The notes: generated from the sequence alone by a model not told the origin. DNA of 64,000 nucleotides from Scyliorhinus canicula (GCF_902713615.1 NC_052152.1:32587810-32651809), one strand, 5' to 3'. Counted from the stretch's first letter, positions 18,282 to 55,894 are shown. Made by a program: numbers and translations.

Positions 18282-18848
18282 TTACTTGAAAAGTACACTT
18301 AATTCATTGAGATGGGCCATTAGTGCAGGCTGCTCAAGAGATAAACTGGGTTGGGTGATTTCCTGCTGACCGCTCAAAGTTTTCATCTGAAGGTTAACAT
18401 ATTTGATTTTCAAGGTGCTTCTACCAACTGGCGTACAGCCAATTCCAAAGAGCTGCTCAAAAATTCCGAGGCACTGTGTGTTCTTGTGAATGGTGCCAGC
18501 CACCGCTACAGCAACGAACCCATGTTTAGAAGTTACACTTCTCATGCCGTTCTTGCTGATGTTGGGATTGAAGAGCAGTTGTTCATCCTTCACCAGGGAC
18601 AGCAAGCGCTGACTGACCATTGCCGAACTCTGGTAATGCTCGGTTTTCTGTTGCTCGCTTTTGTGTTCCCGGACAGAATAAGCAAAGTGAAGTATTGCAT
18701 CCTCCCAAAAGTGTTGTGGACCCCACTCTTCTGGTTGTTGGCCAAAGGAAGGATTTTGGGAGTTCAGAAGGATAAAGAACCATTGGCAGAACTTCTCCCC
18801 TATCATTTGGGAGTCAAAGTATCCATCTGTCTGCGATGGTGTCTCGCA
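18282..18848 (-). CDS. C3orf38-like paralog, gene B, terminal coding exon (DUF4518 C-terminal region)
   Basis: Phase-0 acceptor ctttccag|TGC; KFCQWFFILLNSQNP, EWGPQHFW, AVAGTIH, CLGIFEQLFG motifs; TAA at 18284-18282. Confidence 0.88.
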   Translation of the reverse strand, partial: CETPSQTDGYFDSQMIGEKFCQWFFILLNSQNPSFGQQPEEWGPQHFWEDAILHFAYSVREHKSEQQKTEHYQSSAMVSQRLLSLVKDEQLLFNPNISKNGMRSVTSKHGFVAVAVAGTIHKNTQCLGIFEQLFGIGCTPVGRSTLKIKYVNLQMKTLSGQQEITQPSLSLEQPALMAHLNELSVLFK

Positions 18849-19176
18849 CTGGAAAGTTATAAGGAGCAGGAATAAAATCAAATCATTAGAACAGCATACA
18901 AATGAATAGCAATGATAAATATATTTAAGGTATAAAATATGCACTGGGTAAGGAATAAAAGGAGGACATTGCAACCTTGTCCTTCCTTTGTTCTGAGAAC
19001 TAATAGTTGGAATTGGGACCAATGATTGTGTTGTGAACATAGAGGAAATTTAGCTAATGCTTGAGAGGATCTAAAGTAAGGAATAAAAACCAGTGTGGTC
19101 TTTAGATCATGAGAGAATGTAAATGCAGCTTTCTACCATAGCTCCCCAAGGAACATCCACATCTACTTGACATCGA

Positions 19177-19340
19177 GGGGCTGGTTTAGCTCACTGGGCT
19201 AAATCGCTGGCTTTGAAAGCAGACCAAGCAGGCCAGCAGCACGGTTCGATTCCCGTACCAACCTCCCCGGACAGGCGCCAGAATGTGGCGACTAGGGGCT
19301 TTTCACAGTAACTTCATTGAAGCCTACTCGTGACAATAAG
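19177..19340 (+). mobile_element. SINE family 2
   Basis: Similarity to other copies. Confidence 0.85.
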
Positions 19341-19385
19341 TGATTTTCATGTTCATTTCAAATTGAAAATGATGGGAAAATACTC

Positions 19386-19775
19386 AGATCATTAGAAAGG
19401 CAAAGAGCAGAACACACCACCAGACCCCACCATAATCACAGGCCCCTCTCACCCAGGTTATTCTCTCTTCCAACCTCTCCCATTGGGAAGAAGATACAAA
19501 TGTCTGAGAACACGCACTAATAGATTCAAAAACAGCTTCTTCCCCGGTGTCACCAGACTCCTGAATGACCCTCTTATGGACTGAACTGATCTCTACACGC
19601 ATCTTCTCTACTGAGTAGTACTACACTCCGTATGCTTCACCCGATGTCATATTTACATTGTATATCTATCAAGTATCCTTTTTTCATGTATTGACCGATC
19701 TGACTGGACCGTACACAGAACAATACTTTTCACTGTACCTCAGAACACATGACAATAAACCAAAATCTAATCCAG
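19386..19775 (+). mobile_element. Rex1-like LINE 3' fragment
   Basis: Similar to 34590-34935 (RTRTNR.KNSFFP coding stretch and cactgtacctc..gacaataaac tail). Confidence 0.75.
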
Positions 19776-19984
19776 ACTGTCTAGAGCATGAAATGCTCAA
19801 ATAAGAAATCCTCCTTTAATCGGGAATATTAGGTTGCCGTGGTGTGAAAGAAAGATGACAGTTTCACGCACAAGAATACAGAAAGGAAATATAAGAACAT
19901 AGGAAGAAGAAAAGGCCACTCAGGGGCAGCATGGTGGTGCAGTGGGTTAGCCCTGCTGCCTCACGGCACCGAGGTCCCAGGTTC

Positions 19985-21100
19985 TCTTTTCAGAAAGCCT
20001 CAGCTACCCACCTGGGACTACAGAGGCCTGGAGACAAACCACAAGCTGAAAGTTGCTGTGAGCAATATAACCCTCTCCAGGAAGCTGCTAAAAGTTGTAA
20101 GTATTGCATCTTGAAACCACAGAACTGAATCAATCTACAGGAATGTCATTGCAGGCTGTAGACAAGGACAAGGATCTACTTTTTCTCCAGAGAGACTGAG
20201 AGTGTTTATTTCTAAAACCACAGATACCTGAATTAATCCACAGTAAAAACATTGAACGGAAGGCCAGAATTGAAAAAAAGCTTCCGTAAATCTGAAGCAA
20301 AGACTCTTATCTATTCACTTTCCTTTTTTTTAAATAAATTTTAGAGTACCCAATTATTTTTTCCAATTAAGGGGCAATTTAGCGTGGCCAATTCACCTAA
20401 CCTGCACATCTTTTGGGTTGTGGGGGCGAAACCCACACAGACACGGGGAGAATGTGCAAACTCCACACGGACAGTGACCCAAGGCCGGGATTCGAACCCG
20501 GGTCCTCAGCGCCGTAGGCAGCAATGCTAACCACTGTGCCACCATGCTGCCCCACTTTTCTTTTTTAAATAAATTTAGAGTACCCAATTCATTTCTTCCA
20601 ATTAAGGGGCAATTTAGCGTGGCCAATCCACCTATCCTGCACATCTTTGTATTGTGGGGACGAAACCTACGCAAACACGGGGAGAACGTGCAAAGTCCAC
20701 ATCGAACCTGGGACCGCGGCGCCGTGAGACAGCAGGGCTAACCACTGCACCACCGTGCTTCCCCCTATTCACTTTCATCCTTATTATTTTTCACCCCTTC
20801 CCCTCCTCTGTTTGTCTGTCTTGCCTTGTGTTTGTGGGTAGATTGTGGAGACAGTGAAAGTGGGAGTCAGGAGTTAAATGATAGTTAACCAATTGTATTT
20901 ACTGTGTATGTTATTATAGTTCTTGTTATAAATAAACAGCAATTGTGTTTAAACCTGGTGACTGTAATTATTGGACAGTCAATGGCCAAAGACTCAGGGT
21001 ACTTTCATACGAATTATTGGTTAATTTGTCAACACTTTGTGTTGTAACTCCAAGGCATGTGGGCTGGAATTGACCGTGCACTAGCCCAGGGTGTCGTAAC
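19985..21100 (+). mobile_element. LTR fragment (3' part) interrupted by two SINEs
   Basis: AATAAA at about 20931 and a gtcgtaaca terminus. Confidence 0.5.
20323..20764 (-). mobile_element. Two tandem short HE1-like SINEs inside one 12-bp TSD
   Basis: ctattcactttc at 20311-20322 and 20765-20776. Confidence 0.85.
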
Positions 21101-21185
21101 AACTACGCCAATTTTTGATTAGTGCTGTATAGGCACAATGGCAGAATTACTTTTGTCTGATAAATATGAACATATACAAATATAG

Positions 21186-21723
21186 GAGCTGGTTTAGCAC
21201 AATGGGATAAACAGCTGGCTTGTAAAGCAGAACAAGGCCAGCAGCGCAGGTTGAATTCCCATACCAGTCTCCCCGAACAGGCGCAGGAATGTGGCGACTA
21301 GGAGCTTTTCACAATAATTTCATTGAAGCCTACTTGTGATAATAAATGATTATTATTATTATTATTAACCAAGAGGGCAGCACGGTAGCATGGTGGTTAG
21401 CATAAATGCTTCACAGCTCCAGGGTCCCAGGTTCGGTTCCCGGCTGGGTCACTGTTTGTGCGGAGTCTGCACGTCCTCCCCGTGTGTGTGTGGGTTTCCA
21501 CCGGGTGCTCCGGTTTCCTCCCACAGTCCAAAGATGTGCGGGTTAGGTGGATTGGCCATGCTAAATTGCCCGTAGTGTCCTAAAAAAAGTAAGGTTAAGG
21601 GGGGGGGGGTTGTTGGGTTACGGGTATAGGGTGGATACGTAGGTTTGAGTAGGGTGATCATTGCTCGGCACAACAGCAAGGGCCGAAGGGCCTGTTCTGT
21701 GCTGTACTGTTCTATGTTCTATG
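21186..21723 (+). mobile_element. SINE family-2 variant (21186-21365) followed by an HE1-like SINE (21376-21723)
   Basis: Similarity to other copies. Confidence 0.85.
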
Positions 21724-21794
21724 AAACAATATTGCAGAGTTTAGGATACAAAATCTCTGAGGTGCTAAACATTTTTTGATGTGAAATGAATTAC

Positions 21795-23587
21795 CTGTGT
21801 AACGTTCAAATGTATATTCATTTGTATTTCCAGTTGTCTCTTTGCCTCATCCTGTGCTTGCTCCCTCATTTGTTCTTGCACTTGTCTCTTAATTTGCTCT
21901 TCCAGGTGTCTTCTCGCCTTCTGCTCTGCTTGTTTCATAATTTGCTCATCCACTTCTCTTTTCCTCTGTTCTTCTGCTTGTCTTGCCTGTTCCTCCACTT
22001 GTCGTTTCCTCTGTTCTTCTGCTTGTCTTGCCTGTTCCTCCACTTGTCTTCTCCTCTGTTCTGCTGCTTGTCTTGCCTGTTCCTCCACTTGTCTTCTCCT
22101 CTGTTCTGCTGCTTGTCTTGCCTGCTCCTCCACTTGTCGTTTCCGCTGTTCTTCTGCTTGTCTTGCCTGTTCCTCCACTTGTCTTCTCCTCTGTTCTGCT
22201 GCTTGTCTTGCCTGTTCCTCCACTTGTCTTCTCCTCTGTTCTGCTGCTTGTCTTGCCTGCTCCTCCACTTGTCTTCTCCTCTGTTCTTCTGCTTGTCTTG
22301 CCTGTTCCTCCACTTGTCTTCTCCTCTGTTCTGCTGCTTGTTTTGCCTGCTCCTCCACTTGTCTTCTCCTCTGTTCTGCTGCTTGTCTTGCCTGTTCCTC
22401 CACTTGTCTTCTCCTCTGTTCTGCTGCTTGTCTTGCCTGTTCCTCCACTTGTCTTCTCCTCTGTTCTGCTGCTTGTCTTGCCTGCTCCTCCACTTGTCGT
22501 TTCCTCTGTTCTTCTGCTTGTCTTGCCTGTTCCTCCACTTGTCTTCTCCTCTGTTCTGCTGCTTGTCTTGCCTGTTCCTCCACTTGTCGTTTCCTCTGTT
22601 CTTCTGCTTGTCTTGCCTGTTCCTCCACTTGTCTTCTCCTCTGTTCTGCTGCTTGTCTTGCCTGTTCCTCCACTTGCCTTCTCCACTGTTTTTCTGCTTG
22701 TCTTGCCTGCTCCTCCACTTGTCGTTTCCTCTGTTCTTCGGCTTGTCTTGCCTGCTCCTCCACTTGTCTTGCCTGCTCCTCCACTTGTTGTTTCCTCTGT
22801 TCTTCGGCTTGTCTTGCCTGCTCCTCCACTTGTATTCTCTTCTGTTTTTCTGCTCGTCTTGCCTGCTTCTCCACTTGTCGTTTCCTCTGCTTTTCTGCTC
22901 GTCTTGCCTGCTCCTTCACTTGTCGTTTCCTCTGTTCTGCTGCTTGTCCTGCCTGCTTCTCCAGTTGTCTTCTCCACTGTTTTTCTAGTCTTCTTGCCTG
23001 CTTCTCCACTTGTCTTCTCCTCTGTTTTTCTGCTTGATTTGCCTGCTTCTCCACTTCTCTTTTCCGCTGTTCTTCTGCTTGTCTTACCAGCTCCTCCACT
23101 TGTCTTCTCTGTTTTTCTGCTCGTCTTGCCTTCTTCTTCAGTTGTCGTTTCCTCTGTTCGTCTTCTTGTCTTCCCTGCTCCTCCACTTGTCTTATCCTCT
23201 GTTCTTCTGCTTGTCTCCTCTGCCCCATCTCTCGTCTCCTTGCCTGCTCCTCCACTTGTCTTGCCTGCTCCAATTCCCTTTGTGCCACCTTGAATTCTTG
23301 TGCCTTGGCTTTTACCTTTGCTTTTTCAATTTTCCCCTGCTCCAATTCTTGTTTCCTAACTTGCAGCAGAAGGTTGTGATTTGTATTGTCTGTTACCTTT
23401 TTTTTCTTCCATTCTTCCTGTATCCAGTATAACAAAGCTTTGTTAATAAGTTGCTGTTTGTCTGCTGAAGCTGATATGACAATGTCATGCCTGAATAAGT
23501 ACTTCATTATTGCCTCTCGGACAACCTTCCGCCGTTTTAGTAGTTCTTCTGCACTTTGGCTATAATTTAGAATGACACTGATGGTTT
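21795..23587 (-). CDS. C3orf38-like paralog, gene B, coding exon 2 (1793 nt; YSQSAEELL domain followed by the long 15-aa repeat)
   Basis: Acceptor tttccttgtag|AA; ILNYSQSAEELLKRRKVVRE motif; no stop across 597 codons; phase-0 donor CAG|GTAATT at 21795/21794. Confidence 0.85.
21950..23270 (-). repeat. Coding minisatellite, 45-bp unit (QVEEQARQAAEQRRR), about 28 units
   Basis: Units counted directly from the translation of exon 2B. Confidence 0.95.
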
Positions 23588-23644
23588 CTACAAGGAAATC
23601 AAAAAAGAAGTTTAATTTGTATATATAACACTGGAATAACAATG

Positions 23645-25110
23645 ATTACAGCACAGAAGGAGGGCATTTATCCCATCATGTCTATTCAACAGCAACTTAG
23701 CTAGTCCCACTTTCCTTAGCTTTTTCCTTAGCCCTGATTTTTTTCCTCAGCTGCAATTCAAAATTGAAAGGTATCATTTGATCATTGTGTTCAGCAAAAC
23801 ATTCCGGTTGTAACCACTCATTGCGTAAAAGGGTTTCCTCATGTCAGTTTTGGGTTTTTGCCATTCTTAAATAGACTTTGGTTCTTGGCTCTACTGCCAA
23901 TGGGAAGTTTTTCTCTATCTGTTCTGACCAGAACCTCTCAGGACTTTAAACATCACTGTCAACTCTCCTCTCCACCTTCTCTTCTCCAAGGGAAACAAGT
24001 CCAACTTCTCCAATCCATCCACTTGACTGAACTCCCTCATTTCTGGAACCATTCTCATTTATCTGCATCCAGTCTTCACACCGTGAGGAGCCCAGAATTG
24101 AAAATGATACTCCAATTGAAGCAGAACCAGTATTTTATAAAGACTTATTACTAAACCCCTGGCTTTTCTACTCTCTGCCTTAATTTATAAAGTTCAGGAT
24201 CCTGTACACCATTTTAACTACTGTCTCAACTTACCCTGCCACCTTCAATAATTTGTATTGTTTCGAAAAGCTTTCCTGCCACTGCGGTTACACAGACAGG
24301 CCTGTACTTACTGAGTTTATCCTTACACCCCTTTGTTAACAAAGGTGTCTTCTGAGACTACCTCAATATCGAAGGAGTATTGGAAAATTATAGTTAGTAT
24401 TTCTGCAATTTCCAACCTTATTTGCCTCGGTATCCTCAGATGTATCCCAGCCAGTCCCTTCAACTTAAAGTACAAACAACCTTCCTAATACTGATCTGAA
24501 TTTTTAGCTCATCCAGTATCCCCCCTTTCTGTTGGAAACTTTAAGAGTCCCTTTTGGTTAGCTCCCAATTTCTTCTTATATTCTCTGCTACCTTCTCATT
24601 TCCTTTTTCACTTACCCACTGAACTTTCTATATTTAGCTTGATCCTCACTTGTATTATCAACTGGCACCCCTCTTTCTGCTTCACCTTAATCACTACCCT
24701 TTTCATTATGCTTCGCTCAGCAAAAGAAATCGGAGACCATTCAACACCACTTTCCCACCTACTCACAATATCCAAAGATTCCTTGGGGAGCAAGAAACTG
24801 TCAACCTCTACCTTAAATATATTCAAGAAAGGAACATCCACAACCCTCAGGGATAGACTTTCACAACCCTTTGAGTGAAGCTCTGGGGTTGTTTGTTCTA
24901 CCTTTACCCATCTTGTGAAAATAAAATGACTGTATCCACAGTATCGCCTCTTTAAAGGCAACCAGTTGTTCCATTACAGTTTTGCCTGACAATCTATGAT
25001 TCATTTTATCTGGGGTCAGATCTGTTCTCACCTCACTGAAATTGGCTCTCCTCCAATTCTATATTTTTACTCGATTGTTCCGAGCCTTTCTCTTTGCCTA
25101 ACATAAAATT
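23645..25110 (-). mobile_element. Old CR1-type LINE fragments
   Basis: Degenerate similarity to CR1 ORF2 and 3' end. Confidence 0.5.
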
Positions 25111-30005: not shown

Positions 30006-30595
30006 NNNNNNNNNNNNNNNNNNNNNNNNNNNNNNNNNNNNNNNNNNNNNNNNNNNNNNNNNNNNNNNNNNNNNNNNNNNNNNNNNNNNNNNNNNNNNNN
30101 NNNNNNNNNNNNNNNNNNNNNNNNNNNNNNNNNNNNNNNNNNNNNNNNNNNNNNNNNNNNNNNNNNNNNNNNNNNNNNNNNNNNNNNNNNNNNNNNNNNN
30201 NNNNNNNNNNNNNNNNNNNNNNNNNNNNNNNNNNNNNNNNNNNNNNNNNNNNNNNNNNNNNNNNNNNNNNNNNNNNNNNNNNNNNNNNNNNNNNNNNNNN
30301 NNNNNNNNNNNNNNNNNNNNNNNNNNNNNNNNNNNNNNNNNNNNNNNNNNNNNNNNNNNNNNNNNNNNNNNNNNNNNNNNNNNNNNNNNNNNNNNNNNNN
30401 NNNNNNNNNNNNNNNNNNNCCCCCACCCACNNNNNNNNNNNNNNNNNNNNNNNNNNNNNNNNNNNNNNNNNNNNNNNNNNNNNNNNNNNNNNNNNNNNNN
30501 NNNNNNNNNNNNNNNNNNNNNNNNNNNNNNNNNNNNNNNNNNNNNNNNNNNNNNNNNNNNNNNNNNNNNNNNNNNNNNNNNNNNNNNNNNNNNNN
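30006..30595. other. Assembly gap (N runs) within a poly-C low-complexity tract
   Basis: N characters. Confidence 1.
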
Positions 30596-31239: not shown

Positions 31240-34200
31240 GAAGATCCTCCAGGCTTGAAGATCCTCCGAGGCCCTTGGAGACCTTTTGACCCGACCCGCC
31301 CTGACCTCCGTGACCTGGAAGAAGATCGGGCCCAAACCGGAAGTGAAGCCCCGACCTCGATTTGGAGCCGACCCGGGCCTCGGAGCTCCAAACCCGGCCT
31401 AACTACCGACGCCAGCCCCCGGATCTCCCGGCCTAGTCCCCGGAGCTCCCGACCCGACCCCCGACGGCAAGACCCGACCCAACGCGACCCCGAGAGACCC
31501 GCCAAGCGACCCGACCCGGAGAGGCCCGCCCAGCAACCCGACCTACCTGGTGATGGAAGAAATAAAAATCCACATGGAGGCCCCACAGTGCCGACTTCAA
31601 GATCCGACCCCAGGAGCGCCCAGGGAGGGAACAGACCATGGGACCTAGCCCAACCTGCCCCAGGAAGCCCCCGCCCACGACCCAGGACCCCAGAAACAAC
31701 GGAGACCGCGCGCGAGGACCCGAACACGCTGCAAGGTATTCCCGCGCCCGCAGAACGCCGGGACCCATCCGGATCGCAAACTCGCCCCCCCAGCAATCCC
31801 TTTACCTCAACCAGCGCCCGGGACCCTGCCAGACGCGACCCCGGAAACGTAAACAGCGCCCTGGGCCCCACCAGCGCCCTGGACCCCGCCAGACGCAACC
31901 ACCTACCTTCCACAAGGGCTGACGTCTCCCATTGGATCCCAGGATCATCCAGCAGCAGCCGCCGACCGAGGAAGCGAGGGAAACGCAGCGATCTGCAGGT
32001 TAGACTGAAGTAACGCGGTTTCAAGACCCCTCTCCCGAGCATACTGTGTTGTTCACCGCACATACTCCTGGCAAACGTCCAAGCGATTGAAAACAAGCTG
32101 GATGAACTTAACGCCATACTTACCTCTCAGAGGGAAGTAAGAGACTGCTGTGTGCTCTGTTTCACAGAGACATGGCTCACCCCCGCCTCACCGGACTGTG
32201 CCATACAACCTGAAGGCTTCTCTATTCACCGGGCGGACCGCACGGCATCTTCAGGCAAAGCGAAGGGTGGAGGGGTTTTTCCTCCTCATCAACTCCTCCT
32301 GGTGCTTGGATGTGGTGACCCTGGCGATCTACTGCTCCCCAGACCTGGAATGCTTGACCGTAAAGTGCCGCCCATACTATCTTCCACGTGAGTTCACTTC
32401 AGCCATTATCACAGCGGCCTACATCCCACCCCAGGCAGAAGTGAGGAAGGCGCTGGATGAACTTACACAGTCATAAACATCTATGAAACAGAACACCCGG
32501 AGGCCTTGTTCATTGTGGCCGGAGACTTCAACAAAGCCAACCTCAAGAGTGTACTGCCAAAATTCCACCAGCACATCTCCTGTCCCACCAGGGGCGACAA
32601 CACTCTTGACCACTGCTACTCAAAAATCCAGGGCGACTACCGTTCCATCCCCCGACCGCATTTTGGGAAATCAGACCATAAGACTGTGCTCCTTCTCCCG
32701 GCTTACAAGCAGAAACTCAAGCGGGAGAATCCAGCTAAGAAGGTTGTGCAGTGCTGGTCCGAGGAGACAGAAGAGCTCTTACGTGACTGCTTAGAGACAG
32801 TGGACTGGTCCATATTTAAGAACTCAGCGACTAACTTAAATGAGTATGCCACCACCGTCACAGACTTCATCAGCAAATGTGTGGACGACTACGTGCCAAA
32901 GAAAGCAGTACATACGTTCCCCAACCGGAAACCATAGCTCAACCGCGAGATTGACTCCCTACTGAAGGACAGATCTGAGGCATTCAAGGCAGACGACCCT
33001 GTCCTATACAAGAAATCCAGGTACGACCTCCGCAAAGCCACCCGAGATGCCAAGAGAGAATATCAAACTAAGCTAGAGTCACAGACAGACTCTCGGCGAT
33101 TGTGGCAAGGACTAAACAACATAACGGGCTACAAAGCGAAGCCGAGCAGTATCTCTGGCAGCAGCGCACCCCTCCCCGATGAACTTAATGCATTCTATGC
33201 TCGGTTTGAGCAGGTAACCAACAATCCGCTGTTGAGTGCCCCAGCAGCCCACAATTCACCCATACCCACCATCACAGTTTCCGAAGTCAGATCGGCCTTC
33301 CTGAAAGTGAACCCACGGAAGGGCATGGGCCCGGACGGGATCCCTGGTCGTGCACTCAGAGCCTGCGCATACCAGCTGGCAGAGGTATTCACAGACATCT
33401 TTAACCTATCCCTACTCCACTCCGAGGTCCCCACCTGTTTCAAGAAGACCGGTACCAAAGAAGAACCAGGCAACATGCCTCAATGACTACCGCCCGGTGG
33501 CCCTGACGTCAGTTGTAATGAAGTGCTTCAAGAGGCTGATCATGAAGCGCATCACCTCCATACTCCCGGAACGCCTTGACCCACTTCCATTCGCATACCG
33601 TCGCAACCGGTCCACATCAGACGCCATTTCCCTGGCCCTACACTCATCCCTAGAGCATCTTGAAAACAAGGACTCCTACATCAGACTCCTATTTATTGAC
33701 TACAGCTCTGCCTTCAACACCATAATCCCAGCTAAGCTCATATCAAAGCTCCAAAACCTAGGACTTGGCTCTCCACTCTGGAACTGGATCCTTGACTTTC
33801 TGACCAACAGACCACAATCAGTAAGAATGAACACCAACACCTCCTCCACAATAGTCCTCAATACCAGTGCCCCGCAAGGCTGCGTACTTAGCCCCCTACT
33901 CTACTCCCAGTACACACAAGACTGCGTGGCAAAACTTGGTTCCAACTCCATCTACAAGTTTGCTGACGATTCGACCATAGTGGGCCGGATCTCGAATAAC
34001 GACGAGTCCGAATACAGGAGGGAGATAGAGAATCTAGTGGAGTGGTGTAATGACAACAATCTCTCCCTCAATGCCAGCAAAACTAAAGAGCTGGTCATCG
34101 ACTTCAGGAAGCAAAGTACTGTACACACCCCTGTCAGCATCAACGGGGCCGAGGTGGAGATGGCTAGCAGTTTCAAATTCCTAGGGGTGTGTTATGTTTC

Positions 34201-34935
34201 TTAAATGATGGTGGTACTTCCATTTCCCATCAGCCCCTTCTGTACATACTCAGGCGAGGATCACTACAGGATGCACATCACCAAAAATCTGTCCTGGTCC
34301 ACTCACGTCGACGCTATCACCAAGAAAGCACAACAGCGCCTATACTTCCTCAGGAAACTAAGGAAATTCGGCGTGTCCACATTAACCCTTACCAACTTTT
34401 ACAGATGCACTATAGAAAGCATCCTATCGGGCTGCATCACAGCCTGGTATGGCAACTGCTCGGCCCAGGACCGCAAGGAACTTCAGAGAGTCGTGAATAC
34501 CGCCCAGTCCATCACACGAACCTGCCTCCCATCCATGGACTCCATCTACACCTCCCGCTCCCGCGGGACAGCGGGCAGCATAATCAAGGATCCCTCCCAC
34601 CCGGCTTACTCACTTTTCCAACTTCTTCCATCGGGCAGGAGATACAGAAGTCTGAGAACACGCACGAACAGACTCAAAAACAGCTTCTTCCCCACTGTCA
34701 CCAGACTCCTAAATGACCCTCTTATTGACTGACCTCATTAACACTACTCTGTATGTTTCAACCGATGCCAATGCTTATGTAGTTACATTGTATATCTTGT
34801 GTTGCCCTATTATGTATTCTCATGTATTTTCTTTAATTCCCTTTTCTTCCATGTACTGAATGATCTGTTGAGCTGCTTGCAGAAAAATACTTTTCACTGT
34901 ACCTCGGTACACGTGACAATAAACAAATCCAATCC
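31240..34935 (+). mobile_element. Rex1/Babar LINE, near full length, frameshifted
   Basis: [61 protein letters not shown] motifs; caatc-type tail. Confidence 0.9.
34190..34268. mobile_element. 79-bp LTR-like insertion (TGT...ACA) in Rex1
   Basis: Splits FLGV|HIT; flanked by gggtg / ggatg. Confidence 0.7.
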
Positions 34936-35388: not shown

Positions 35389-35512
35389 CTTCTGTAGTCG
35401 ATACGTTCATCTTGTTGTTTATAGTGTCCTTCAGTGCAAACAAATCACTGTAGCTTAAGAATTGTAGGATTTCAGTGCACCCTGTTTCTTGCATCACAGA
35501 AAAATTAGGCAT
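35389..35512 (-). CDS. C3orf38-like paralog, gene B, coding exon 1 (MPNFSVMQETGCTEILQFLSYSDLFALKDTINNKMNVSTTE)
   Basis: Aligns with gene A exon 1 (GC.EILQ.L...L..L.DT..N.M). Phase-1 donor GAAG|GTAGGT at the equivalent position. Confidence 0.85.
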
Positions 35513-36470: not shown

Positions 36471-39400
36471 GTTTGTGAAGGGGCTGTTGTCAAGTGACAG
36501 TTTGGATACGGGGGGGGGGAGATGACTCACCAGGGGAAGGCAGTAGTAGCCAGGCTCATGGCACCGTGGCTGGCTTTGCTGCACAGAAGGGCAGGAAAAA
36601 GATTGGCAGGACTATAGTCATAGGGGATTCAATCGTAAGGGGAGTAGACGGGCGTTTCTGTGGTCGAAAACGAGACTCCCGAATGGTATGTTGCCTCCCA
36701 GGTGCATGGGCCAGGGATGTCTCCGATCGGCTGCAGGACATACTGAAGGGGGAGGGTGAACAGCCAGTTGTCGTGGTGCATATAGGCACCAACGATATGG
36801 GTAGAAGACGGGATGAGGTCCTACAATCAGAATTTAGGGAGTTAGGAGATAAGTTAAAAAGTAGGACCTCAAAGGTAGTAATCTCAGGATTGCTACCAGT
36901 GTCACGAAACAGTCAGAGTAGAAATTTAAGAATAGTCAGAATGAATACGTGGCTTGAGAGATGGCGCAGGAGGGAGGGGTTCAGATTTTTGGGACATTGG
37001 AACCGGTTCTGGGGGCGGTGGGACCATTACAAATCGGATGGTCTACACCTGGGCAGGACTGGAACCAATGTTCTCGGGGGTGCTTTTGCTAACACTGTTG
37101 GGGAGGTTTTAAACTAATGTGGCAGGGGGATGGGAACCAGATTAGGAAGTTAGAGGTCAGTAAAGAAGCAGCAACTAAAGCCAGTAAGGTACTGGATAAT
37201 AAACTCAATGTGACTAAGGGGAAGAGTAGACAGGGAAGAGATGATGATCGCAAAGGGACAGGTGGTCTGAGGTGCATTTGTTTTAATGCAAGAAGTGTAG
37301 CAGGTAAGGCAGATGAATTTAGGGCTTGGATTAGTACCTGGGAATATGATGTTATTGGTATACTGAGACTTGGTTGAGGGATGGGCAAGACTGGCAACTA
37401 AATATCCCAGGGTATAGATGCTTCTGAAGGGATAGAGAGGGAGGTAAAAGGGTGGAGGAGTTGCATTACTGGACAGAGATGATATCACAGCTGTGATTAA
37501 GGAGGGCACGATGGAGGATTCGAGCACTGAGGCAATATGGATAGAGCTAAGAAATAGGAAGGGTGCAGTAACATTGTTGGGACTTTACTATAGGCCTCCC
37601 AAAAGCGAGCATGAAGTAGAGGTACAAATATGTAGACAGATTATAGAACAATGTAGGAGCAATAGGGTGGTTGTGATGGGAGATTTTAACTTCCCCAACA
37701 TTGAATGGGACTCATGTAGTTGGAGGCGTAGATGGAGCAGAATTTGTAAGGAGCATCTAGGAGAGTTTTTTAGAGCAGTATGTAAATAGTCCAACTCGGG
37801 AAGGGGCCATACTGGACCTGGTATTGGGGAATGATTCCGGACAGGTGGTTGACGTTTCAGTCGGCAATTACTTTGGGAATAGCAATCACAATTCCATAAG
37901 TTTTAGAATACTCGTGGACAAAGACGAGTGTGGTCCTAAAGGAAGAGTGCTAAATTGGGGAAAGGCCAACTATAACAAAATTCGGCAGGAGCTCGGGAAT
38001 GTGGATTGGGAGCAGCTGAATAAGGGTAAATTCACATTTGAAATGTGGGAGTCTTTTAAGGAAAGGTTGATCAGAGTGCAGGACAGACATGTTCCTGTGA
38101 AAATGAGAGATAGAAATGGCAAGATTAGGGAACCATGGATGAAGAGTGGAATTGTGAGACTAGCTAAGATGAAAAAGGAAACATACATAAGATCGAGGCG
38201 ACTCAAAACTGATGAAGCTTTGGAGGAATATCGGGAAAGTAGGACAAATCTCAAACGCATAATAAAGAGGGCTAAAAGGGGTCATGAAATATTGTTGGCT
38301 AACAGGGTTAAGGAAAATCCCAAAGCCTTTTATTCGTATATAAGGAGCAAGAGGGTAACTAGAGAAAGGATTGGCCCACTCAAAGACAAAAGAGGGAATT
38401 TATGCGTGGAGTCAGAGGAAATGAGTGAGCTTCTTAATGAGTACTTTGCATCGGTATTCACCAAGGAGAGGGACATGATGGATGTTGAGGCTAGGGATGG
38501 ATGTTTAAATACTCTAGGTCATGTCGGCATAAGGGGGAGGTTTTGGGTATTCTAAAAGGCATTAAGGTGGACAAGTCCCCAGGACCGAATGGGATCTATC
38601 CCAGGTTACTGAGGGAAGCGAGGGACGAAATTGCTGGGGCCTTAACAGATATCTTTGCAGCATCCTTGAGCACAGGTGAGGTCCCGGAGGACTGGAGAAT
38701 TGCTAATGTTGTTCCTTTGTTTAAGAAGGGTAGCAGGGATAATCCAGGGAATTATAGACCTGTGAGCTTGACGTCAGTGGTAGGCAAACTATTGGAGAAG
38801 ATACTGAGGGATAGGATCTATTCATATTTGGAAGAAAATAGACTTATCAGTGATAGGCAGCATGGTTTTGTGCAGGGAAGGTCATGTCTTACAAACCTAA
38901 TAGAATTAGAATTCTTTGAGGAAGTGACAAAGTTAGTTGATGAGGGAAGGGCTGTAGATGTCATATGAGGTTCAGGGTGTACTAGCTAGATGGATAAAGA
39001 ACTGGCTGGGCAACAGGAGACAGAGAGTAGTGGTGGAAGGGAGTCTCTCAAAATGGAGAAAGGTGACTAGTGATGTTCCACAGGGATCCGTGCTCGGACC
39101 ACTGTTGTTTGTGATATACATAAATGATCTGGAGGAAGGTATAAGTGGTCTGATGAGCAAGTTTGCAGATGATACTAAGATTGGTGGAGTTGCAGATAGC
39201 GAAGCGGACTGTCAGAGAATACAGCAAAATATAGATAGATTGAAGAGTTGGGCAGAGAAATGGCAGATGGGAGTTCAATCCAGGCAAATGCGAGGTGATG
39301 CATTTTGGACGATCTAACTCAAGAGCAGACTATATGGTCAATGGAAGAGTCCTGGGGAAAATTCATGTACAGAGAGATCTGGGAGTTCAAGTCCATTGTA

Positions 39401-40066
39401 CCCTGAAGGTGGCAACGCAGGTCGATAGTGGTCAAGAAGGCATACAGCATGCTTACCTTCATCGGACGGGGTATTGAGTACAAGAGTCGGCAGGTCATGT
39501 TACAGTTGTATCGGACTTTGGTTATGCCACATTTGGAATACTGCGTCGCCACATTACCAGAAGGATGTGGATGCTTTAGAGAGGGTGCAGAGGAGGTTCA
39601 CCAGGATGTTGCCTGGTATAGACGTTGCTAGCTATGAAGAAAGGTTGAGTAGATTAGGATTGTTTTCATTGGAAAGACGGAGGTTGAGGGGAGACCTGAT
39701 TGAGGTCTACAAAATTATGAGAGGTATGGACAGGGTGGATAGCCACAAGCTTTTTCCAAGAGTGGGGGTATCAATTACAAGGGGTCACGATTTCAAGGTG
39801 AGAGGGGAAAGGTTTAAGGGAGATGTGCGTGGAAAGTTTTTTACGCAGAGGGTGGTGGGTGCCTGGAATGCTTTGCCAGCGGAGGTGGTAGAGGCGGGTA
39901 CGATAGCATCATTTAAGATGCATCTGGACAGATATATGAACGGGTGAGGTACAGAGAGAAATAGACCTTGGAAAATAGGCAACAGGTTTAGATAAAGGAT
40001 CTGGATCGGCGCAGGCTGGGAAGGCCAAAGGGCCTGTTCCTGTGCTGTCATTTTCTTTGTTCTTTG
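36135..40066 (+). mobile_element. CR1-clade LINE, near full length (SGNH esterase ORF1, frameshifted APE-RT ORF2)
   Basis: IVIGDSIVRG, VHIGTND, DGLHL; GDFNFP, NYRPVSLTS, PQGSVLGP, FADD; (ttctttg)n tail. Confidence 0.92.
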
Positions 40067-42152: not shown

Positions 42153-42158
42153 TTTATT
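42153..42158 (-). terminator. Candidate proximal polyadenylation signal (AATAAA) for gene A
   Basis: tttatt on the + strand, about 60 nt downstream of the stop; more distal signals are also possible. Confidence 0.3.
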
Positions 42159-42219: not shown

Positions 42220-42888
42220 TCAATCACAAATTCCTACAATGTGTTCTTCAAAAACTTGCAGCAACTCATTAGATTCATATTTGATGACGGGGAGCTCGGA
42301 ATCCTCATTGGGCTGGACATTTGCTGGCGCTGCTCCGCCTTGACCAGTGATCTTTAGGTGGACAAATTTCATCTTCCAATTGTTCTCGCTGCTTGGACAA
42401 CGGATAAGACCAAAGATTTGCTCAAAAATCCCCAGGCAGATTGACTCTCTGTGAATGGTACCAGCCACTGCAATAATAACTAATCCATGAGGAGAATGGA
42501 TACACTTCAGTCCATTGCCAGTCAGGTTAGGATTCAGGAATAGATGTTCCTCTTTTGGCAGTGCTAATAAACGGAGGCTAACCATAACTGCACCAGTGTA
42601 CACCTCCAACTGCTGCTCAGAAGTTCTATAGGAAAACTTAAGTATAACATCTTCCCAAAAATGCTGAGGGCCCCATTCTTTCGATTGTTCTTGCAGCAAA
42701 GGATTCTGGGAGTTCAGAAGCTGATAAAACCACTTGCAGAATTCAAGTCCCATGGTTTGGTAATCATCCTTATAATTTGCTGCTATGTCACTTCGTGGGG
42801 CATTATTTCCAGATGTGCTTCCAGAAGAATAATTTCTCTGAAAGGAAGAATATGTATATTTATCCTTAGCTGGGAATATACTGTGCAT
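42220..42888 (-). CDS. C3orf38: C3orf38 homolog, gene A, terminal coding exon (DUF4518 C-terminal, NTF2-like region)
   Basis: EFCKWFYQLLNSQNP, EWGPQHFW, HGLV..AVAGTIH, CLGIFEQIFGLIRCP motifs; TGA at 42222-42220. Two phase-0 acceptors (exon start 42888 or 42837). Confidence 0.92.
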   Translation of the reverse strand: MHSIFPAKDKYTYSSFQRNYSSGSTSGNNAPRSDIAANYKDDYQTMGLEFCKWFYQLLNSQNPLLQEQSKEWGPQHFWEDVILKFSYRTSEQQLEVYTGAVMVSLRLLALPKEEHLFLNPNLTGNGLKCIHSPHGLVIIAVAGTIHRESICLGIFEQIFGLIRCPSSENNWKMKFVHLKITGQGGAAPANVQPNEDSELPVIKYESNELLQVFEEHIVGICD

Positions 42889-42949
42889 CTGAATAAACAC
42901 AATAACCAGAGGATTACATAAGACAATGAGCTAATGCTCCTTTACCAAT

Positions 42950-44040: not shown

Positions 44041-44044
44041 GCTG

Positions 44045-46500: not shown

Positions 46501-46509
46501 ATCTTGTAA

Positions 46510-49387: not shown

Positions 49388-49575
49388 CTGGGATGCAGTG
49401 CTGCCTTCTCTCCAATATTCTATAACTTTTTGAACAAGTAGGCATTTCTCTGCATTAGATGGCATAACAATATTATGTTTTGCTAAATATTGAAATATTA
49501 TCTCACGGTGGATCTTCTTCCTTTTCAGCAGCTCTTCGGCACTCTGACTGTAACACAGTATGGCATCCATGGCTT
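49388..49575 (-). CDS. C3orf38: C3orf38 homolog, gene A, coding exon 2 (EAMDAILCYSQSAEELLKRKKIHREIIFQYL...EYWREGSTASQ)
   Basis: Acceptor cctgcag|AA completes GAA with exon 1. YSQSAEELL.R.K.HRE.IF.YL motif of C3orf38. Phase-0 donor CAG|GTATTG. Length 188 nt. Confidence 0.92.
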
Positions 49576-49837
49576 CTGCAGGTGATAAAGCAACAATAAT
49601 ATTGCTAACAAAGGAAAAATGCCTCATCGAAGACATATAGGAATTGTTTTAGCTAGACAGTTATGAATATGTGGAAACTCAACATTGTATTACATTCCCA
49701 CTGCTGCAGTTATCTTTTAATGTAGTCTGTCCAGATGCAATATTCCTCACATCCCCTTTTTTGCCCTTTCCCCGCAAGCCTTGATTTGCTTACTAATCAA
49801 GAATATATCTATCTCAGCCTTAAGTATACTCAGGACA

Positions 49838-50065
49838 GGGCGGCATGGCGGCACATTGGTTAGCACTGCTGCCTCACGGCGCTGAGGACCCGGGTTCGAT
49901 ACCGGTCCCTGGTTCGATACTGGCCCCTGGTCACTGTTCATGTGGAGTTTGCCCATTCTCCCCCTGTCTGTGTGCATCTCACCCCTACAACCCAAAAGGA
50001 TGTGCAGGGTAGGTGAATTGGCCACGTTAAATTGTCCCTTAACTGAAAAAAAAGAATTGGATACT
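49838..50065 (+). mobile_element. Short HE1-like SINE
   Basis: Similarity to other copies. Confidence 0.75.
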
Positions 50066-50999
50066 TGATAGGAATCGACTATTTATAGATCTGATAGGTA
50101 AAAGAAGGCTATTTAGTGTAAATATTAAGTCCCAGTTTTAATACCCATTTTAAATTGAGGATTTCAGCACTCATAACCTCAGGTCATGATAAAACACATA
50201 GCTTCAACAGAGATACAAGAAGCCTGTCATAAACTCATTGGAGATTAAAACAACATTTTTACTAAGCAAAGATGAAAATGCTATTGTTCTAACAAACATA
50301 TTTTCAAAGACAGTTTGACATTCAAACATGAGCGGTACCAGTAATCTGATCAAGGACGAAGCAGGCACCACAGCAACATGAAGGCACCATTGTTCATAAT
50401 GTGGATAAAGCGAAGTCAGCAGAAAACCAGTAGAAACCAGTCTTGATAATAGCACAGAATCACAGTCCATAACATACACAAATATTCAAACATGAAACAT
50501 TTAGAACTTACGTTGCACATTAAGGATTGACAGCTAACCGTCGAATCAAATACATTTGATTCTAACCCAAACCAATTAGGACGACATGGAGGCGTAGATA
50601 GATGGCTCACAACAGATAAGATTTCCTATAAATGTGATGGTCCGTACGGCCATCTTTATCCAGGATCATTCTATACTTTGATCTAACTATTCGCTATCCT
50701 TATTTTCATATTTTCACTTTTCCACTCTGCTGTTTTGCCGTAAGCAAGAAACCATTTCTGTATTATTTTTAAAGTTAAATTGTTTATAAGTTACTTCTCT
50801 TTAAGTCCTTTTGCTAGCCGGACTTTATTGAGAATAGATTTAAGTTTCTCCTAATTGTAATCAAATAGAGACAATAAAGATTCTTGTTTGCATCCGAGAA
50901 GTTTAACTCAAATTTCTACTGAGTTTTAGTGTCGCAAGACCTCACTAGTTCCGAATGGTAAATCTCATCAGTACTCTAAATTTTAAAATATAGTCAATG

Positions 51000-53000
51000 A
51001 CTCTGTCCCCATGGATCTCTGTGGCAAGGAGTTCAACCCTCTGCGAAAAGTAGTTCCTCCTCTCAGTCTTAAATCAGCACCCCTTTATCCTGAGACTATG
51101 CCTTCTGGTCCTAGACTCTCCCATGAGGGGAAACATCCTCTCAGCATTTACCCTGTCAGGCCCCTTAAGCATCCTATATGTTTCAATGAGATCACCTCGC
51201 ATTCTTCGAAATTCCAATAAGTCCCAACCTGTTTAATCTTTGCTCATAAGACAATCTCTCCATAACAGGGATCATTCTAGTGAACCTTCTCTGAACCACC
51301 TCCAATGAAATAATACATCTTCTTAAATAAGGGGATCAAAACTGCTCACAGTACTCCAGATGTGGTCTCACCAGTACCTTGTACATTTACAGCAAGACTG
51401 CCCTACTCTTATACTCTAACCCCATTGAAATAAGGGTCAACATTCCATTAGCCTTCTTGATAACCTGCACTATGTGCTAGCTTTCTGTGTTTCATGCACA
51501 AGTAGCCCCAAGACCTTTTCTACAGTTTTTCTCCATTTACTGAAAAAGTAGCGACACAAGAGTTTTCCGTCCGGAGTTACTTTCTTCCGTATTGCTCTAC
51601 ATGTTAAAATGTTACAAAGGTCCCTGCTGTAGAATAAAAACTAGATTTTGTTCCGATTGTTGAAACTTCTAGACATTCCTTTCCTCTTCATGGTTTGAGA
51701 AAGGCGAATAAATATACACTGGTACCACAAAAGTATCAGAAGCCTGTGCTAATATCTACTGATTTTCCTCATTTCCTCTGGTCACTCCTTTTCCTCCTTC
51801 TTTATGATAAGGCCAAATACTGAAAAGGTATTCTTTTACCTATCAATTATCCCCATGACCTTGCACAAAAACTTGAAGCTAGACTGCAATACGCATCTCA
51901 ACCTCCAAAATGAGGATTCCAAGCTTTCCACTAACAGAGACACCTTTCTCACTTGGGCTCTCATTTATACAAGCTGCACAGTTGATGGATATTTACACCA
52001 GTAGACATCCTCTGGCAGTTAGGTGAATCAACCTCTGCCATAGACGTGAAACAATGTCATTGCTCCAATTCAACCAATTGCTCCAAAACACATTCTACAA
52101 ACTAATCTACAAACAAATAGACCATTTCTGCCAATTTGATTGCCCTGTCTATGTGAAGCTTAAAGCCCTCCACAATTATTACACTGCCTTTGTTACAAGC
52201 TCTGATAATTTTGTATTTAACATTCTGTGAAATGGTATAACTGCTGTAAGAAGGGCTACAAAACCGGCCCACTGGTGTTTCCTGATTCTTGCTGTCCCTA
52301 ATTTCACCCATACTGATTTTACTTCATGATCTTTTCAGATCGTGTCCTTATATCATGTCATATTGTACTATCAAAGCTACCCTTCCTAGGGCAGCACGGT
52401 GGTGCAGTGGTAGCACTGCTGTCTCATGGCGCCGAGGTCCAAGGTTCGATCCCAGCTCTGGGTCACTGTCCGTGCGGAGTTTGCTCATTCTCCCCGTGTT
52501 TGCGTGGGTTTTGCCCCCACAATCTAAAGATGTGCAGGGTAGGTGGATTGGCCACGCTTGCCCTTAATTGGAAAAATGAATTGGATACTCTAAATTTATT
52601 TTTTAAAAAGCTACCCCTCCTCCTTTGCCAATCTGTTTGTCTGTCTTTCCAAAATATTGGAATACTTATTTTCCAATCTTGATCACCTTGTAACCATGTT
52701 CTGTAATGACGATTAGATCAGTCATTTACCTCTATTTGTGCCACTAGTTCTTCCATCTTATTCCAGATGCTTTGTGCGTTCAGATAATTTCATTTTCTAT
52801 TCCCCGCAGTGACATTACTTCCTGATGTACAATTTTTGTTAAACTTCCTTCTCTTTTCTTGTCCCATTCTGCTTGCCTTTACACATATTGAAATATCGTT
52901 CCGAATTCTTGACCGATTTTTGGATTTCTAAATCCCCCTTTGCCAAACCTGCCCTCCCCCCACCCTGATCTCTTTTGTTAGTTTAAAGCTCCAATATTCT
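51000..53000 (-). mobile_element. Old CR1 fragments
   Basis: Degenerate ORF2 remnants. Confidence 0.55.
52389..52606 (+). mobile_element. Short HE1-like SINE with 15-bp TSD
   Basis: aaagctaccc(t/c)tcct at 52373 and 52607. Confidence 0.85.
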
Positions 53001-53277
53001 AAACCACCCAAATATTAATCTATTTTTGCTTTTACAGATGATTATGAGGCTAATGTATACTGTCTGCAGGTTACCCTTTTAGGCCATGATTCCCTGATTA
53101 TAAAGCAAATTCACTGGTACTTTTATGCAGTATAGTAGTGATTCTATTAAATTCAGAGCCAGTATTTTAAACCTTTCTTTTACTTTACATTATGCAGAAT
53201 CTCCCACTTCTGCAATCACAACCTCTTCAAATCATTCATGCTTTGAATGAATGCAAAATCACAGGTTGATGAATAAA

Positions 53278-53454
53278 GGGGCTGTTTAGCACAGGGCTAA
53301 ATCGCTGGCTTTGAAAAGCAGACCAAGCAGGCCAGCAGCACGGTTCAATTCCCGTAACAGCCTCCCCAAACAGGCGCCGGAATGTGGCGACTAGGGGCTT
53401 TTCACAGTAACTTCATATGAAGCCTACTCGTGACAATAAGCGATTTTCATTTCA
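53278..53454 (+). mobile_element. SINE family 2
   Basis: Similarity to other copies. Confidence 0.85.
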
Positions 53455-53699
53455 TAAAGAGTTCAGGTAGCAGATGGGCCATCCAGAGCAAGGAAAATTC
53501 TCCCAGATGCAAGTCACAATTTCTGTTGAGGCAAAGGAAGGGTATTGCAACTGGTTTCAGAGTTTGTGGAACAGTAGGGAGTACAAAAAACAGTTGGGAT
53601 CCTCTGCTCCTGGTCCCTATTCAGGTGCACACATGTGCCAAGGACAAGATATGTCAGGGGTAGGTGGGAACGAGGAGCAAACATACACAGAAGCACAGA

Positions 53700-54480
53700 G
53701 AATATAAGGAGGAGGTCTTTTAGCCCTTTGAGCCTGCTCCGCCATTCATTATGATCATGGTTGATCATCAAGTCCAATACCCTGACCCCACCTTCCCCCA
53801 TACTCCTGGATCCTTTCGCCCAAGAGCGATATCTAATTCCTTCTTGAAATTACACAATGTTTTGGCCTCAACTACTTTCTGTGGTAGCAAATTCCAGATT
53901 CACCACTCTCTGGGTGAAGAAATTTCTCCTCACCTCCTTATCCTCAACTATGTCCCATAGTTCTGGACTCCCCCACCATCAGGAACATTCTTTCTGAATC
54001 TACCCTATAAGGGGCCTCACGGTAGCATGGTGGTTAGCATCAATGCTTCACAGCTCCAGGGTCCCAGGTTCGATTCCCGGCTGGGTCACTGTCTGTGTGG
54101 AGTCTGCACGTCCTCCCCGTGTGTGCGTGGGTTTCCCCCGGGTGCTCCGGTTTCCTCCCACAGTCCAAAGATGTGCGGGTTAGGTGGATTGGCCATGCTA
54201 AATTGCCCGTAGTGTAAGTTTAATGGGGGGATTGTCGGGTTACGGGTATACGGGTTCCGTGGGTTTAAGTAGGGTGATCATTGCTCGGCACAACATCGAG
54301 GGCCGAAGGGCCTGTTCTGTGCTGTACTGTTCTATGTTCTATGTTCTATATAACTGTGTTAGAATTTTCGAAGTTTCTATGAGATCCCATTTCACTCTTC
54401 TAAACTCCAATGAATACAATCCTAACCTATTTAGTCTCTCCTCATGCGACAGTCCCGCATGCCAGGAATCAGCCCAGTAA
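53700..54480 (-). mobile_element. CR1 3' fragment with nested SINE
   Basis: Similar to the other CR1 3' ends in the window. Confidence 0.65.
54011..54348 (+). mobile_element. HE1-like SINE
   Basis: Near-identical to 26297-26630. Confidence 0.85.
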
Positions 54481-54556
54481 ACCTAACATATTATTAATAT
54501 GTCATTATTATTAATTATTAATCTTTATTAGTGTCACAAGAAGGCTCACATTAACA

Positions 54557-55380
54557 GTGTTGGGGGGGGGGGGGGGGGTGTCAGTGTGGGGGGGTGTCAG
54601 TGTGGGGGGGGTGTCAGTGCGGGAGGGTAGTCAGTGTGGGGGGGGGGGCGGTGGTCAGTGTGGGGGGGGCGGTGGTCAGTGTGGGGGGGGCGGTGGTCAG
54701 TGTGGGGGGGGCGGTGGTCAGTGTGGGGGGGGCGGTGGTCAGTGTGGGGGGGGCGGTGGTCAGTGTGGGGGGGGCGGTGGTCAGTGTGGGGGGGCGGTGG
54801 TCAGTGTGGGGGGGGGGGGTGGTCAGTGTGGGGGGGGCGGTGGTCAGTGTGGGGGGGGCGGTGGTCAGTGTGGGGGGGGGGGGCGGTGGTCAGTGTGGGG
54901 GGGGGCGGTGGTCAGTGTGGGGGGGCGGTGGTCAGTGTGGGGGGGGCGGTGGTCAGTGTGGGGGGGGCGGTGGTCAGTGTGGGGGGGGCGGTGGTCAGTG
55001 TGGGGGGGGCGGTGGTCAGTATGGGGGGGGGTGGTCAGTGTGGGGGGATCAGTGTGGGGGGGTCAGTGTGGGGGCGGGGGGGTCAGTGTGGGGGGGTCTG
55101 TGTATGGGGGTCAGTGTATGGGGGTCTGTGTGGGGGTGGTGTTAGTGTGGGGGTGGGGTCAGTGTGGGGGGGCGTCAGTGTGGGGGGGTGTCAGTGTGGG
55201 GGGGTGTCAGTGTGGGGGGGTGTCAGTGTGGGGGGGATTAGTGTGGGGGGGTCAGTGTGTGGGGGGTTCAGTGTGGGGGGGGGGGGTCAGTGTGGGGGCG
55301 GGGGGGTCAGACTGTTTTTGTGTGTGTGTTCGGGGGTCATTGGGGGGGGGGGGCATTGGGGGGGGGGGGGGGGGGGGGTC
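54557..55380. repeat. G-rich minisatellite, unit about 21 bp (ggtggtcagtgtggggggggc), at the 5' end of gene A intron 1
   Basis: Direct inspection. Confidence 0.95.
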
Positions 55381-55393
55381 AGCCGCCACCCAC

Positions 55394-55520
55394 CTGTTCC
55401 GTTCTGTATCTTTAACATGCGGTTGGTGACGGTGTCTGCCAGCGGGTACAGCTCCCCCGGGCCCAGGCTCTGCAGGATCTCCCGGCAGCCGCACCGCTCC
55501 TTGTCCGTCAGCAGCGCCAT
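55394..55520 (-). CDS. C3orf38: C3orf38 homolog, gene A, coding exon 1 (MALLTDKERCGCREILQSLGPGELYPLADTVTNRMLKIQNGT)
   Basis: Strong Kozak context gtcgccATGG at 55520. The peptide matches the recalled C3orf38 N-terminus (GCRxxL...LxDTVTNR). Phase-1 donor G|GTGGGT at 55394/55393. Confidence 0.9.
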
Positions 55521-55892: not shown

Positions 55893-55894
55893 GC

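Follow-up and report, generated by a model that had tools for sequence, protein, structure and literature searches.

Why does one of two neighbouring C3orf38 genes in the catshark Scyliorhinus canicula encode a protein of 827 amino acids (aa) when the other encodes one of 310 aa? We addressed this question in a 64,000-nucleotide (nt) stretch of its genome (GCF_902713615.1 NC_052152.1:32587810-32651809), called here the window. Between positions 18282 and 55520, its minus strand carries two tandem DUF4518 (C3orf38/Din) genes, A and B, with three coding exons each. With moderate confidence, we propose that A is the ordinary C3orf38/Din ortholog, and that B is an old paralog in which a single alpha-helix of evolvable length would separate an N-terminal domain (N-domain) from an NTF2-like C-terminal domain (C-domain). 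The 827-aa form appears to be a recent coding-minisatellite expansion of an already variable spacer.

The gene pair is real, and the gene models were confirmed. An earlier note on this DNA, made from the sequence, had described two minus-strand, three-exon genes with equal intron positions and phases (1 and 0), an exon 2 of 188 nt in A and of 1793 nt in B, and splicing of B into an uninterrupted 827-aa frame. The exon structure agreed with it on each of these points, with GT-AG at all four introns. The coding sequence (CDS) of B is 2484 nt long, or 827 codons and a stop, and contains no internal stop. The coding exons are as follows.

55394..55520, minus strand: gene A exon 1 CDS, 127 nt, ATG at 55520, phase-1 GT donor; PF15008 at 5e-06; in a CpG island
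49388..49575, minus strand: gene A exon 2, 188 nt, N-domain; PF15008 at 2.7e-20
42220..42837, minus strand: gene A exon 3 CDS and stop, 618 nt, NTF2-like C-domain; PF15008 at 1e-61; AATAAA at 42158
35389..35512, minus strand: gene B exon 1 CDS, 124 nt, ATG at 35512, phase-1 GT donor; AT-rich; B-type N-terminus as in the orthologs
21795..23587, minus strand: gene B exon 2, 1793 nt, the remainder of the N-domain and then an E/R/K/Q/A helical spacer
18282..18848, minus strand: gene B exon 3 CDS and stop, 567 nt, NTF2-like C-domain; PF15008 at 3e-50; first AATAAA at 18100

For gene A, a product of 310–327 aa had been given. The lower figure stood, because every shark and ray A ortholog fits the junction of the 310-aa product; the 327-aa variant, which requires an alternative in-frame acceptor at 42888, did not. 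No third DUF4518 copy or stray pseudo-exon was found by tblastn within the window.

Membership in PF15008 was judged by the Pfam gathering score of 27 bits. The scores of exon 3 were 209 bits in A and 171 bits in B, and exon 2A reached 73 bits. In exon 2B, its first 70 aa scored 55.5 bits (6e-15), and exon 1B by itself 16.5 bits, which is under the gathering score. Between A and B, identity is 46% in the C-domain, close to the rough half estimated by eye in the earlier note, and 45–53% in the N-domain. Exon 3 of A is 98% identical to that of S. torazame A, and exon 3 of B 90% identical to that of S. torazame B. The two genes also differ at their 5′ ends. Exon 1A lies in a CpG island (GC 0.73, CpG observed/expected 0.68), whereas exon 1B (GC 0.37, CpG observed/expected 0.48) does not. 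The presence of the island at A and not at B would fit a broad expression of A and a restricted expression of B.

A database search with the N-terminal part of exon 2B, covering proteins of 328–1045 aa, returned eight B orthologs of 383–453 aa, which NCBI names 'C3orf38 homolog' or 'C3orf38-like'.

Mustelus asterias, 423 aa; Carcharodon, 398 aa; Cetorhinus, 406 aa; Rhincodon, 407 aa
Heptranchias, 453 aa; Mobula, 409 aa; Hypanus, 383 aa; S. torazame, 428 aa (partial)

All eight have an E/R/K/Q-rich segment between the two domains, and the same exon 2/3 junction is read through in each. The 827-aa protein was not among the database proteins of 328–1045 aa, where the catshark species itself is apparently unrepresented. 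The same species also have an A-type protein of 307–317 aa, on the same chromosome-scale contigs where these are visible. For example, the 311-aa A gene of Mustelus asterias ends 3.9 kb before the 423-aa B gene on the same strand. The order in the catshark is the same, with A at 55520-42220 and B directly downstream on the same strand at 35512-18282. With exon 3B as query, an exhaustive HMMER search further yielded A0A4W3K6L9 (297 aa) from Callorhinchus milii, a protein whose two domains are both of B type. The annotation of its N-terminus seems faulty, since the exon-1 part is absent.

The earlier note had proposed a gene tree and a search among relatives. Both were run, and B formed a separate chondrichthyan clade, in tandem order in Mustelus too. 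In the maximum-likelihood tree, B was placed in one clade with A0A4W3K6L9 and the long proteins of sharks and rays, and both A and the C3orf38 of bony vertebrates fell outside it. Support was 100/99 for the B clade including Callorhinchus and 100/100 for the chondrichthyan A clade. The placement of Callorhinchus within the B clade at this support indicates that the duplication is older than the split between sharks/rays and chimaeras, i.e., crown Chondrichthyes. The free tree placed B outside A plus bony C3orf38 (85/56), and an approximately unbiased test did not reject a chondrichthyan A+B clade (p=0.39).

The view that the duplicate is old was thus upheld by the B clade and by the intact B orthologs annotated in eight other sharks and rays. 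The same orthologs, with the B-type protein of Callorhinchus, contradict for cartilaginous fishes the statement that C3orf38 is generally single-copy. The paralog had also been taken as undescribed. Among the 56 papers that mention C3orf38 in the literature searched, none was found by title and abstract to treat a paralog, but the proteins already stand in NCBI annotation under the names given above.

Linker lengths were counted between the conserved Trp at the end of the N-domain and the WF..LNS motif with which the C-domain begins.

A-type proteins: 37–44 residues
Callorhinchus B (A0A4W3K6L9): 52 residues, Pro-containing
Other elasmobranch B proteins: 126–208 residues
Catshark B in the window: 565 residues

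The flanks of the spacer are conserved on both sides across sharks and partly in rays, and they are kept in catshark B. This conservation suggests that the helical linker dates to the elasmobranch stem. Of the dumbbell or tether architecture that had been ascribed to the catshark paralog, the two domains with a helical spacer stood. The architecture is elasmobranch-wide, however, and only the 565-residue version is lineage-specific.

The catshark B linker contains a total of about 28 units of 15 aa, encoded by a 45-nt repeat in two parts.

21949..22770, minus strand: young 45-nt (15-aa) coding minisatellite, 18.3 copies, 93% identity
22763..23271, minus strand: older diverged copies of the 45-nt repeat, ~80% identity, higher-order periods 90 and 135; ~10 copies at 22763-23216

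The young part appears to be very recent, because half of its units (9 of 18) match the consensus or differ from it by one synonymous change. Its open frame should not be read as a sign of selection, because the unit is a multiple of three and stop-free, and no stop closes any of the three minus-strand frames within the array. The older copies are ~20% diverged and contain no stop and no frameshift, with a codon nonsense/missense ratio of 0.11. These copies and the flanks weigh more than the young array on the question of selection. Codon-position and synonymous/nonsynonymous counts among units were uninformative, with 12 independent variants in the young part and 24 in the old part.

The core of the spacer expanded separately in other lineages, as EEQTRRQV (8 aa, 5–6 copies) in Heptranchias and as EEDLRRQ (7 aa, 3–4 copies) in Mobula, beside the 15-aa units in Scyliorhinus. 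S. torazame has at least five units, a lower bound if the assembly collapsed the array, as its short contigs suggest.

The composition of the spacer (residues 101–640) was Q 0.235, R 0.20, E 0.198, A 0.135, K 0.078 and V 0.065. In these 540 residues there are no Pro and four Gly; Q, R, E, A and K together make up 85%, R and K 0.28, and the net charge is +39. Opposite-charge pairs at i+3/i+4 occur at 0.49 per residue, compared to 0.01–0.05 in the domains. Strongly hydrophobic and aromatic residues (LIVMFWY) amount to 11.5%, with one Val and two or three Ala in every 15 residues placed on a 4-3-4-4 stripe. No Pfam family matched the spacer. Sequence matches in PDB, to a designed helical repeat and to a charged region of IF-2, were rejected as compositional only. 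The composition is most likely the signature of a charged single alpha-helix (SAH). A helix of ~540 residues would span ~81 nm at 0.15 nm per residue.

The structure was modelled by AlphaFold as a monomer on the full-length Mustelus ortholog, with a 59-sequence alignment and a mean predicted local distance difference test score (pLDDT) of 83.8. The model had an N-domain of short helices, a continuous helix at 86–180 (95 residues, pLDDT ~90), a second helix at 193–229, and an alpha+beta C-domain; both end domains had pLDDT >90. The N-domain, the helix and the NTF2-like domain were thus each modelled confidently, which favours the earlier proposal that the two domains are separable modules. The model and human C3orf38 superpose; for a separate model of the N-domain (pLDDT 93), the template modelling (TM) score against human C3orf38 was 0.94.

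The C-domain of the model matched NTF2, G3BP1, NXF1-NXT1 and Bre5 with Foldseek probability 1.0, E ~1e-5 and a TM score by target of 0.7–0.8, whereas no match to the C-domain was found in PDB at the sequence level. The NTF2-like domains (NTF2, G3BP1/2, NXF1-NXT1 and Bre5) would have the same fold as the B C-domain at a sequence identity of only 11–17%.

For the N-domain, no significant Foldseek match was found outside its own family. With VIA-align its best matches were the AIM2 PYD (Z 6.1, 81 residues), the vFLIP DED (5.9) and the FADD DD (5.7), with Z below the tool's caution level for helical bundles. Death-fold domains (PYD, DED, DD, CARD) made up more than 20 of the 50 matches listed, at Z 4–6, and SAP-like partial matches were seen too. 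The death-fold likeness of the modelled N-domain may serve as a lead for the function of the whole C3orf38 family.

These observations can be put together as follows. B arose before the shark/ray-chimaera split and keeps both modules of the family, an N-terminal six-helix bundle of ~100 residues and, at the other end, the NTF2-like domain. A Pro-free, E/R/K/Q-rich segment that folds as one long helix would have been added at the 3′ end of exon 2 in the elasmobranch stem. This helix, most likely a charged SAH and presumably monomeric, would act as a semi-rigid tether separating the modules. Its core is a short purine-rich codon repeat (RRQVEEQ-like) that grows and shrinks in frame, with independent expansions in Heptranchias (units of 8 aa), Mobula (7 aa) and Scyliorhinus (15 aa). 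In the catshark, slippage or unequal exchange of the 45-nt unit would recently have produced the ~28 units, the 565-residue linker and the 827 aa, with a helix of ~80 nm. The full-length product would be made in the catshark, and the length of the spacer may matter for its function. By analogy with NTF2-like domains, one end might serve dimerisation or peptide binding and the other homotypic or partner contact. By analogy with mouse Din, the protein might act at the nucleus or nuclear envelope.

Several observations weigh against this reading. The structure rests on the model of the Mustelus ortholog rather than of the catshark 827-aa protein, and the 4-3-4-4 Val/Ala stripe might also fit a non-heptad coiled coil formed as a dimer. 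The units of the young array are too alike to reveal selection (mismatches per codon position 9/15/9). At sites where nine other B orthologs show no variation, catshark B has 7 singleton changes. In other elasmobranch B proteins the number of such changes is 0–4, and A has none. Four of the seven fall at residues 775–785, among them a Trp to Leu change at a site where at least 90% of the 59 family members share the residue. With Mustelus as outgroup, lineage-specific changes numbered 24 in catshark B versus 11 in S. torazame B (p=0.04); in gene A there was 1 in the catshark versus 4 in S. torazame. The folded domains changed within Scyliorhinus by 0.091 per site in B versus 0.021 in A. The 24 missense changes predict ~2 nonsense changes under neutrality, and the probability of an intact frame under pure neutrality is ~0.13. 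No B-type fragment was found among Logan-derived proteins of 103–329 aa with exon 3B as query; the best match was from Acipenser (51%).

The stripe bears on the form of the helix. The spacer might be a long dimeric coiled coil of non-heptad type, with a 15-residue period and right-handed or straight, zipped by dimerisation of the NTF2-like domains. We consider this a tentative alternative, rather doubtful as it stands. Each unit places Val, Ala, Ala and Arg at 4-3-4-4 spacing, and the NTF2, G3BP and NXF domains are dimers in the matched structures. Strongly hydrophobic residues amount to only 11.5%, however, and the seam consists mainly of Ala and Arg. The net charge of +39 and the dense i/i+4 salt-bridge pairs also speak for a charged single helix rather than a coiled coil.

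The changes at conserved sites and the rates allow another explanation, in which B is under relaxed constraint in the catshark. A runaway minisatellite and losses at conserved sites would then mark early pseudogenisation, and the frame would be open merely because the 45-nt unit is stop-free. In support of this explanation are the seven singletons with the Trp to Leu change, the excess of 24 over 11 changes, the great youth of the array and the value of ~0.13 for no stop given neutrality. Further, the B/A rate ratio was ~4–5 within Scyliorhinus compared to ~1.2 on the Mustelus branch (Fisher p=0.004). Against it, no damage is seen in the 827 codons, the four canonical splice sites, the start codon or the poly(A) signal, PF15008 is still matched by the domains at 171 and 55 bits, and the conserved spacer flanks are kept. 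The acceleration of B was not significant with Carcharodon as outgroup (p=0.17). S. torazame B is fast too, so that the speed-up may be a genus-wide functional shift.

We judge pseudogenisation unlikely on this balance. B in the catshark does show signs of accelerated or relaxed evolution, and its intact frame is suggestive but short of decisive. The earlier claim that the duplicate is kept under selection was not borne out for the giant repeat, whose 18 youngest units are near-identical and whose open frame is automatic.

It could also be that B is functional and that the array is usually spliced out as an intron, leaving a product of ~400 aa. A candidate site lies upstream of the array.

23086..23090 (last exon base 23088), minus strand: candidate internal in-frame GT donor CTG/GTAAGA, phase 0

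Joined to exon 3B, this donor gives an open 396-aa frame, which is of ordinary shark size and near the 383–453 aa range of the orthologs. Inside the repeat, CAG/GCAAGA occurs 23 times (21987-23265, minus strand), always in phase 0, and fits the GC-AG donor consensus; any of these 23 sites could serve in the same way. We regard such skipping as improbable. A splice from 23088 would cost the spacer its conserved C-flank (...QMNIHLNVTQ), a segment that catshark B shares with all sharks. The distal donor is the one used in every annotated ortholog, and S. torazame B lacks the site at 23088. In addition, purine-rich repeats usually favour exon inclusion.

The window contains two assembly gaps, both in intron 1 of B.

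30006-30419 and 30431-30595, no strand: two assembly gaps inside B intron 1, in a poly-C/G simple repeat

The poly-C/G repeat runs on beyond both sides of the gaps and through the 11 bases that separate the two runs of N. The gaps lie 4.8 kb from the exon 1B donor and 6.4 kb from the exon 2B acceptor. A break of the B frame by a gap was ruled out, as the gap is intronic and no reading frame crosses it. Only the length of B intron 1 and the scaffold join of exon 1B to exons 2–3B depend on the gaps. The linkage of exon 1B to exons 2–3B is plausible because of its B-type N-terminus and the same A-then-B order in Mustelus.

That the copy number of the 45-nt array is itself an assembly artefact, over-expanded or collapsed, so that 827 aa is not the true length, is highly improbable: the units are near-identical and estimated-size gaps lie nearby in the scaffold, but variant units (EK-type and AR-type) follow an ordered pattern, no gap lies within or adjoins the array, and S. 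torazame has its five or more units even in a short-read assembly, which tends to collapse arrays.

The preferred reading, an old paralog with a single-helix spacer of evolvable length, can be compared with known systems. C3orf38/Din (mouse 4930453N24Rik; PF15008) has the same N-terminal helical domain and NTF2-like C-domain, three coding exons and the same intron phases. Catshark A is its ortholog, 98% identical to S. torazame A and ~60% to tetrapods. B is ~46% identical to A and differs from C3orf38/Din in having the linker of 37–46 residues replaced by a 565-residue helix, in lying behind a non-CpG promoter region and in forming a separate chondrichthyan clade. The elasmobranch 'C3orf38 homolog/-like' proteins are true B orthologs, with the same spacer flanks, exon 2/3 junction and tandem position behind A. 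Compared to them, the catshark linker is 2.7 to 4.5 times longer and built of a 15-aa unit repeated ~28 times, and the catshark copy has unusual replacements at conserved sites.

The B spacer resembles the SAH (ER/K) domains of myosin VI/X, INCENP, CAF-1 KER and drebrin in being Pro-free and E/R/K-rich with dense opposite charges at i/i+4. It likewise lies between two functional modules and is predicted as one continuous helix. It differs from them in being richer in Gln and Ala, in having Arg well above Lys and in its strict 15-residue period. It is also far longer than the cited examples, such as the 128-angstrom CAF-1 helix (PMC10335832). Single alpha-helices are described as spacers and springs and sometimes as nucleic-acid or microtubule binders (PMC4183817, PMC4571873, PMC10335832). 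Charged single alpha-helices are common as spacers, in ~1.5% of genes (PMC5812594).

A second, independent case of this C-domain behind a long repeat is found in frogs, where long proteins with the C-terminal part of DUF4518 (Eleutherodactylus coqui, 589 aa; Lithobates pipiens, 528–653 aa, ~30 isoforms) have the same NTF2-like C-domain after long Gln-rich helical repeats. In contrast to B, these have another N-terminus without the YSQSAEELL domain. They form very long branches in the bony-vertebrate part of the tree, where their placement is unsure, and they are not orthologous to B.

Other repeats and mobile elements surround the two genes. Downstream of B, a Ty3/gypsy-like long terminal repeat retrotransposon (7233-10912, minus strand) has two open reading frames (ORFs) of 681 and 517 aa, which encode gag, aspartyl protease, reverse transcriptase (RT), RNase H and integrase. 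Between A and B lies an ORF of long interspersed nuclear element (LINE) type (36494-39947, plus strand), with a GDSL esterase-like domain and then RT fragments. A further RT-bearing LINE-type copy lies inside B intron 1 (32150-34732, plus strand). Upstream of A there is a 7.8-kb satellite of 18–19 bp units in ~380 copies (56179-63950). A 36-bp repeat of 10 copies, 95% identical (55529-55894), ends 9 bp before the A ATG, and A intron 1 contains a 21-bp G-rich repeat (54641-55096).

The giant form may be expressed and of benefit, it may be neutral, or it may be on the way to being lost. In the boldest interpretation, which seems to us distinctly unlikely, the minisatellite would be a selected length dial. 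The spacer would then be one of the longest natural single alpha-helices (~540 residues, ~80 nm), a molecular ruler that sets the distance of a death-fold-like N-domain from an NTF2-like C-domain. If this were true, the re-expansions in Heptranchias, Mobula and Scyliorhinus would reflect recurrent selection for reach, and the length of the spacer could be polymorphic within the species, with graded effects on function.

In DepMap, C3orf38 is listed with those selectively essential genes that have been studied least (PMC9576728). In a 2025 preprint, mouse Din knockout arrested incisor growth and Din was needed for incisor stem-cell homeostasis; the Din-GFP signal was nuclear or at the nuclear membrane, and a link to Rho GTPase was proposed (PMC12136219). 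C3orf38/Din is one of the least-studied conserved vertebrate proteins, and cartilaginous fishes keep a second copy of it. The locus offers a clean example of a coding minisatellite building what would be a long charged helix. With linkers from ~50 to ~565 residues, the B proteins form a natural series of inter-domain distance in which the domains appear separable. This series would provide ready constructs for asking what each end binds and whether the spacing matters.

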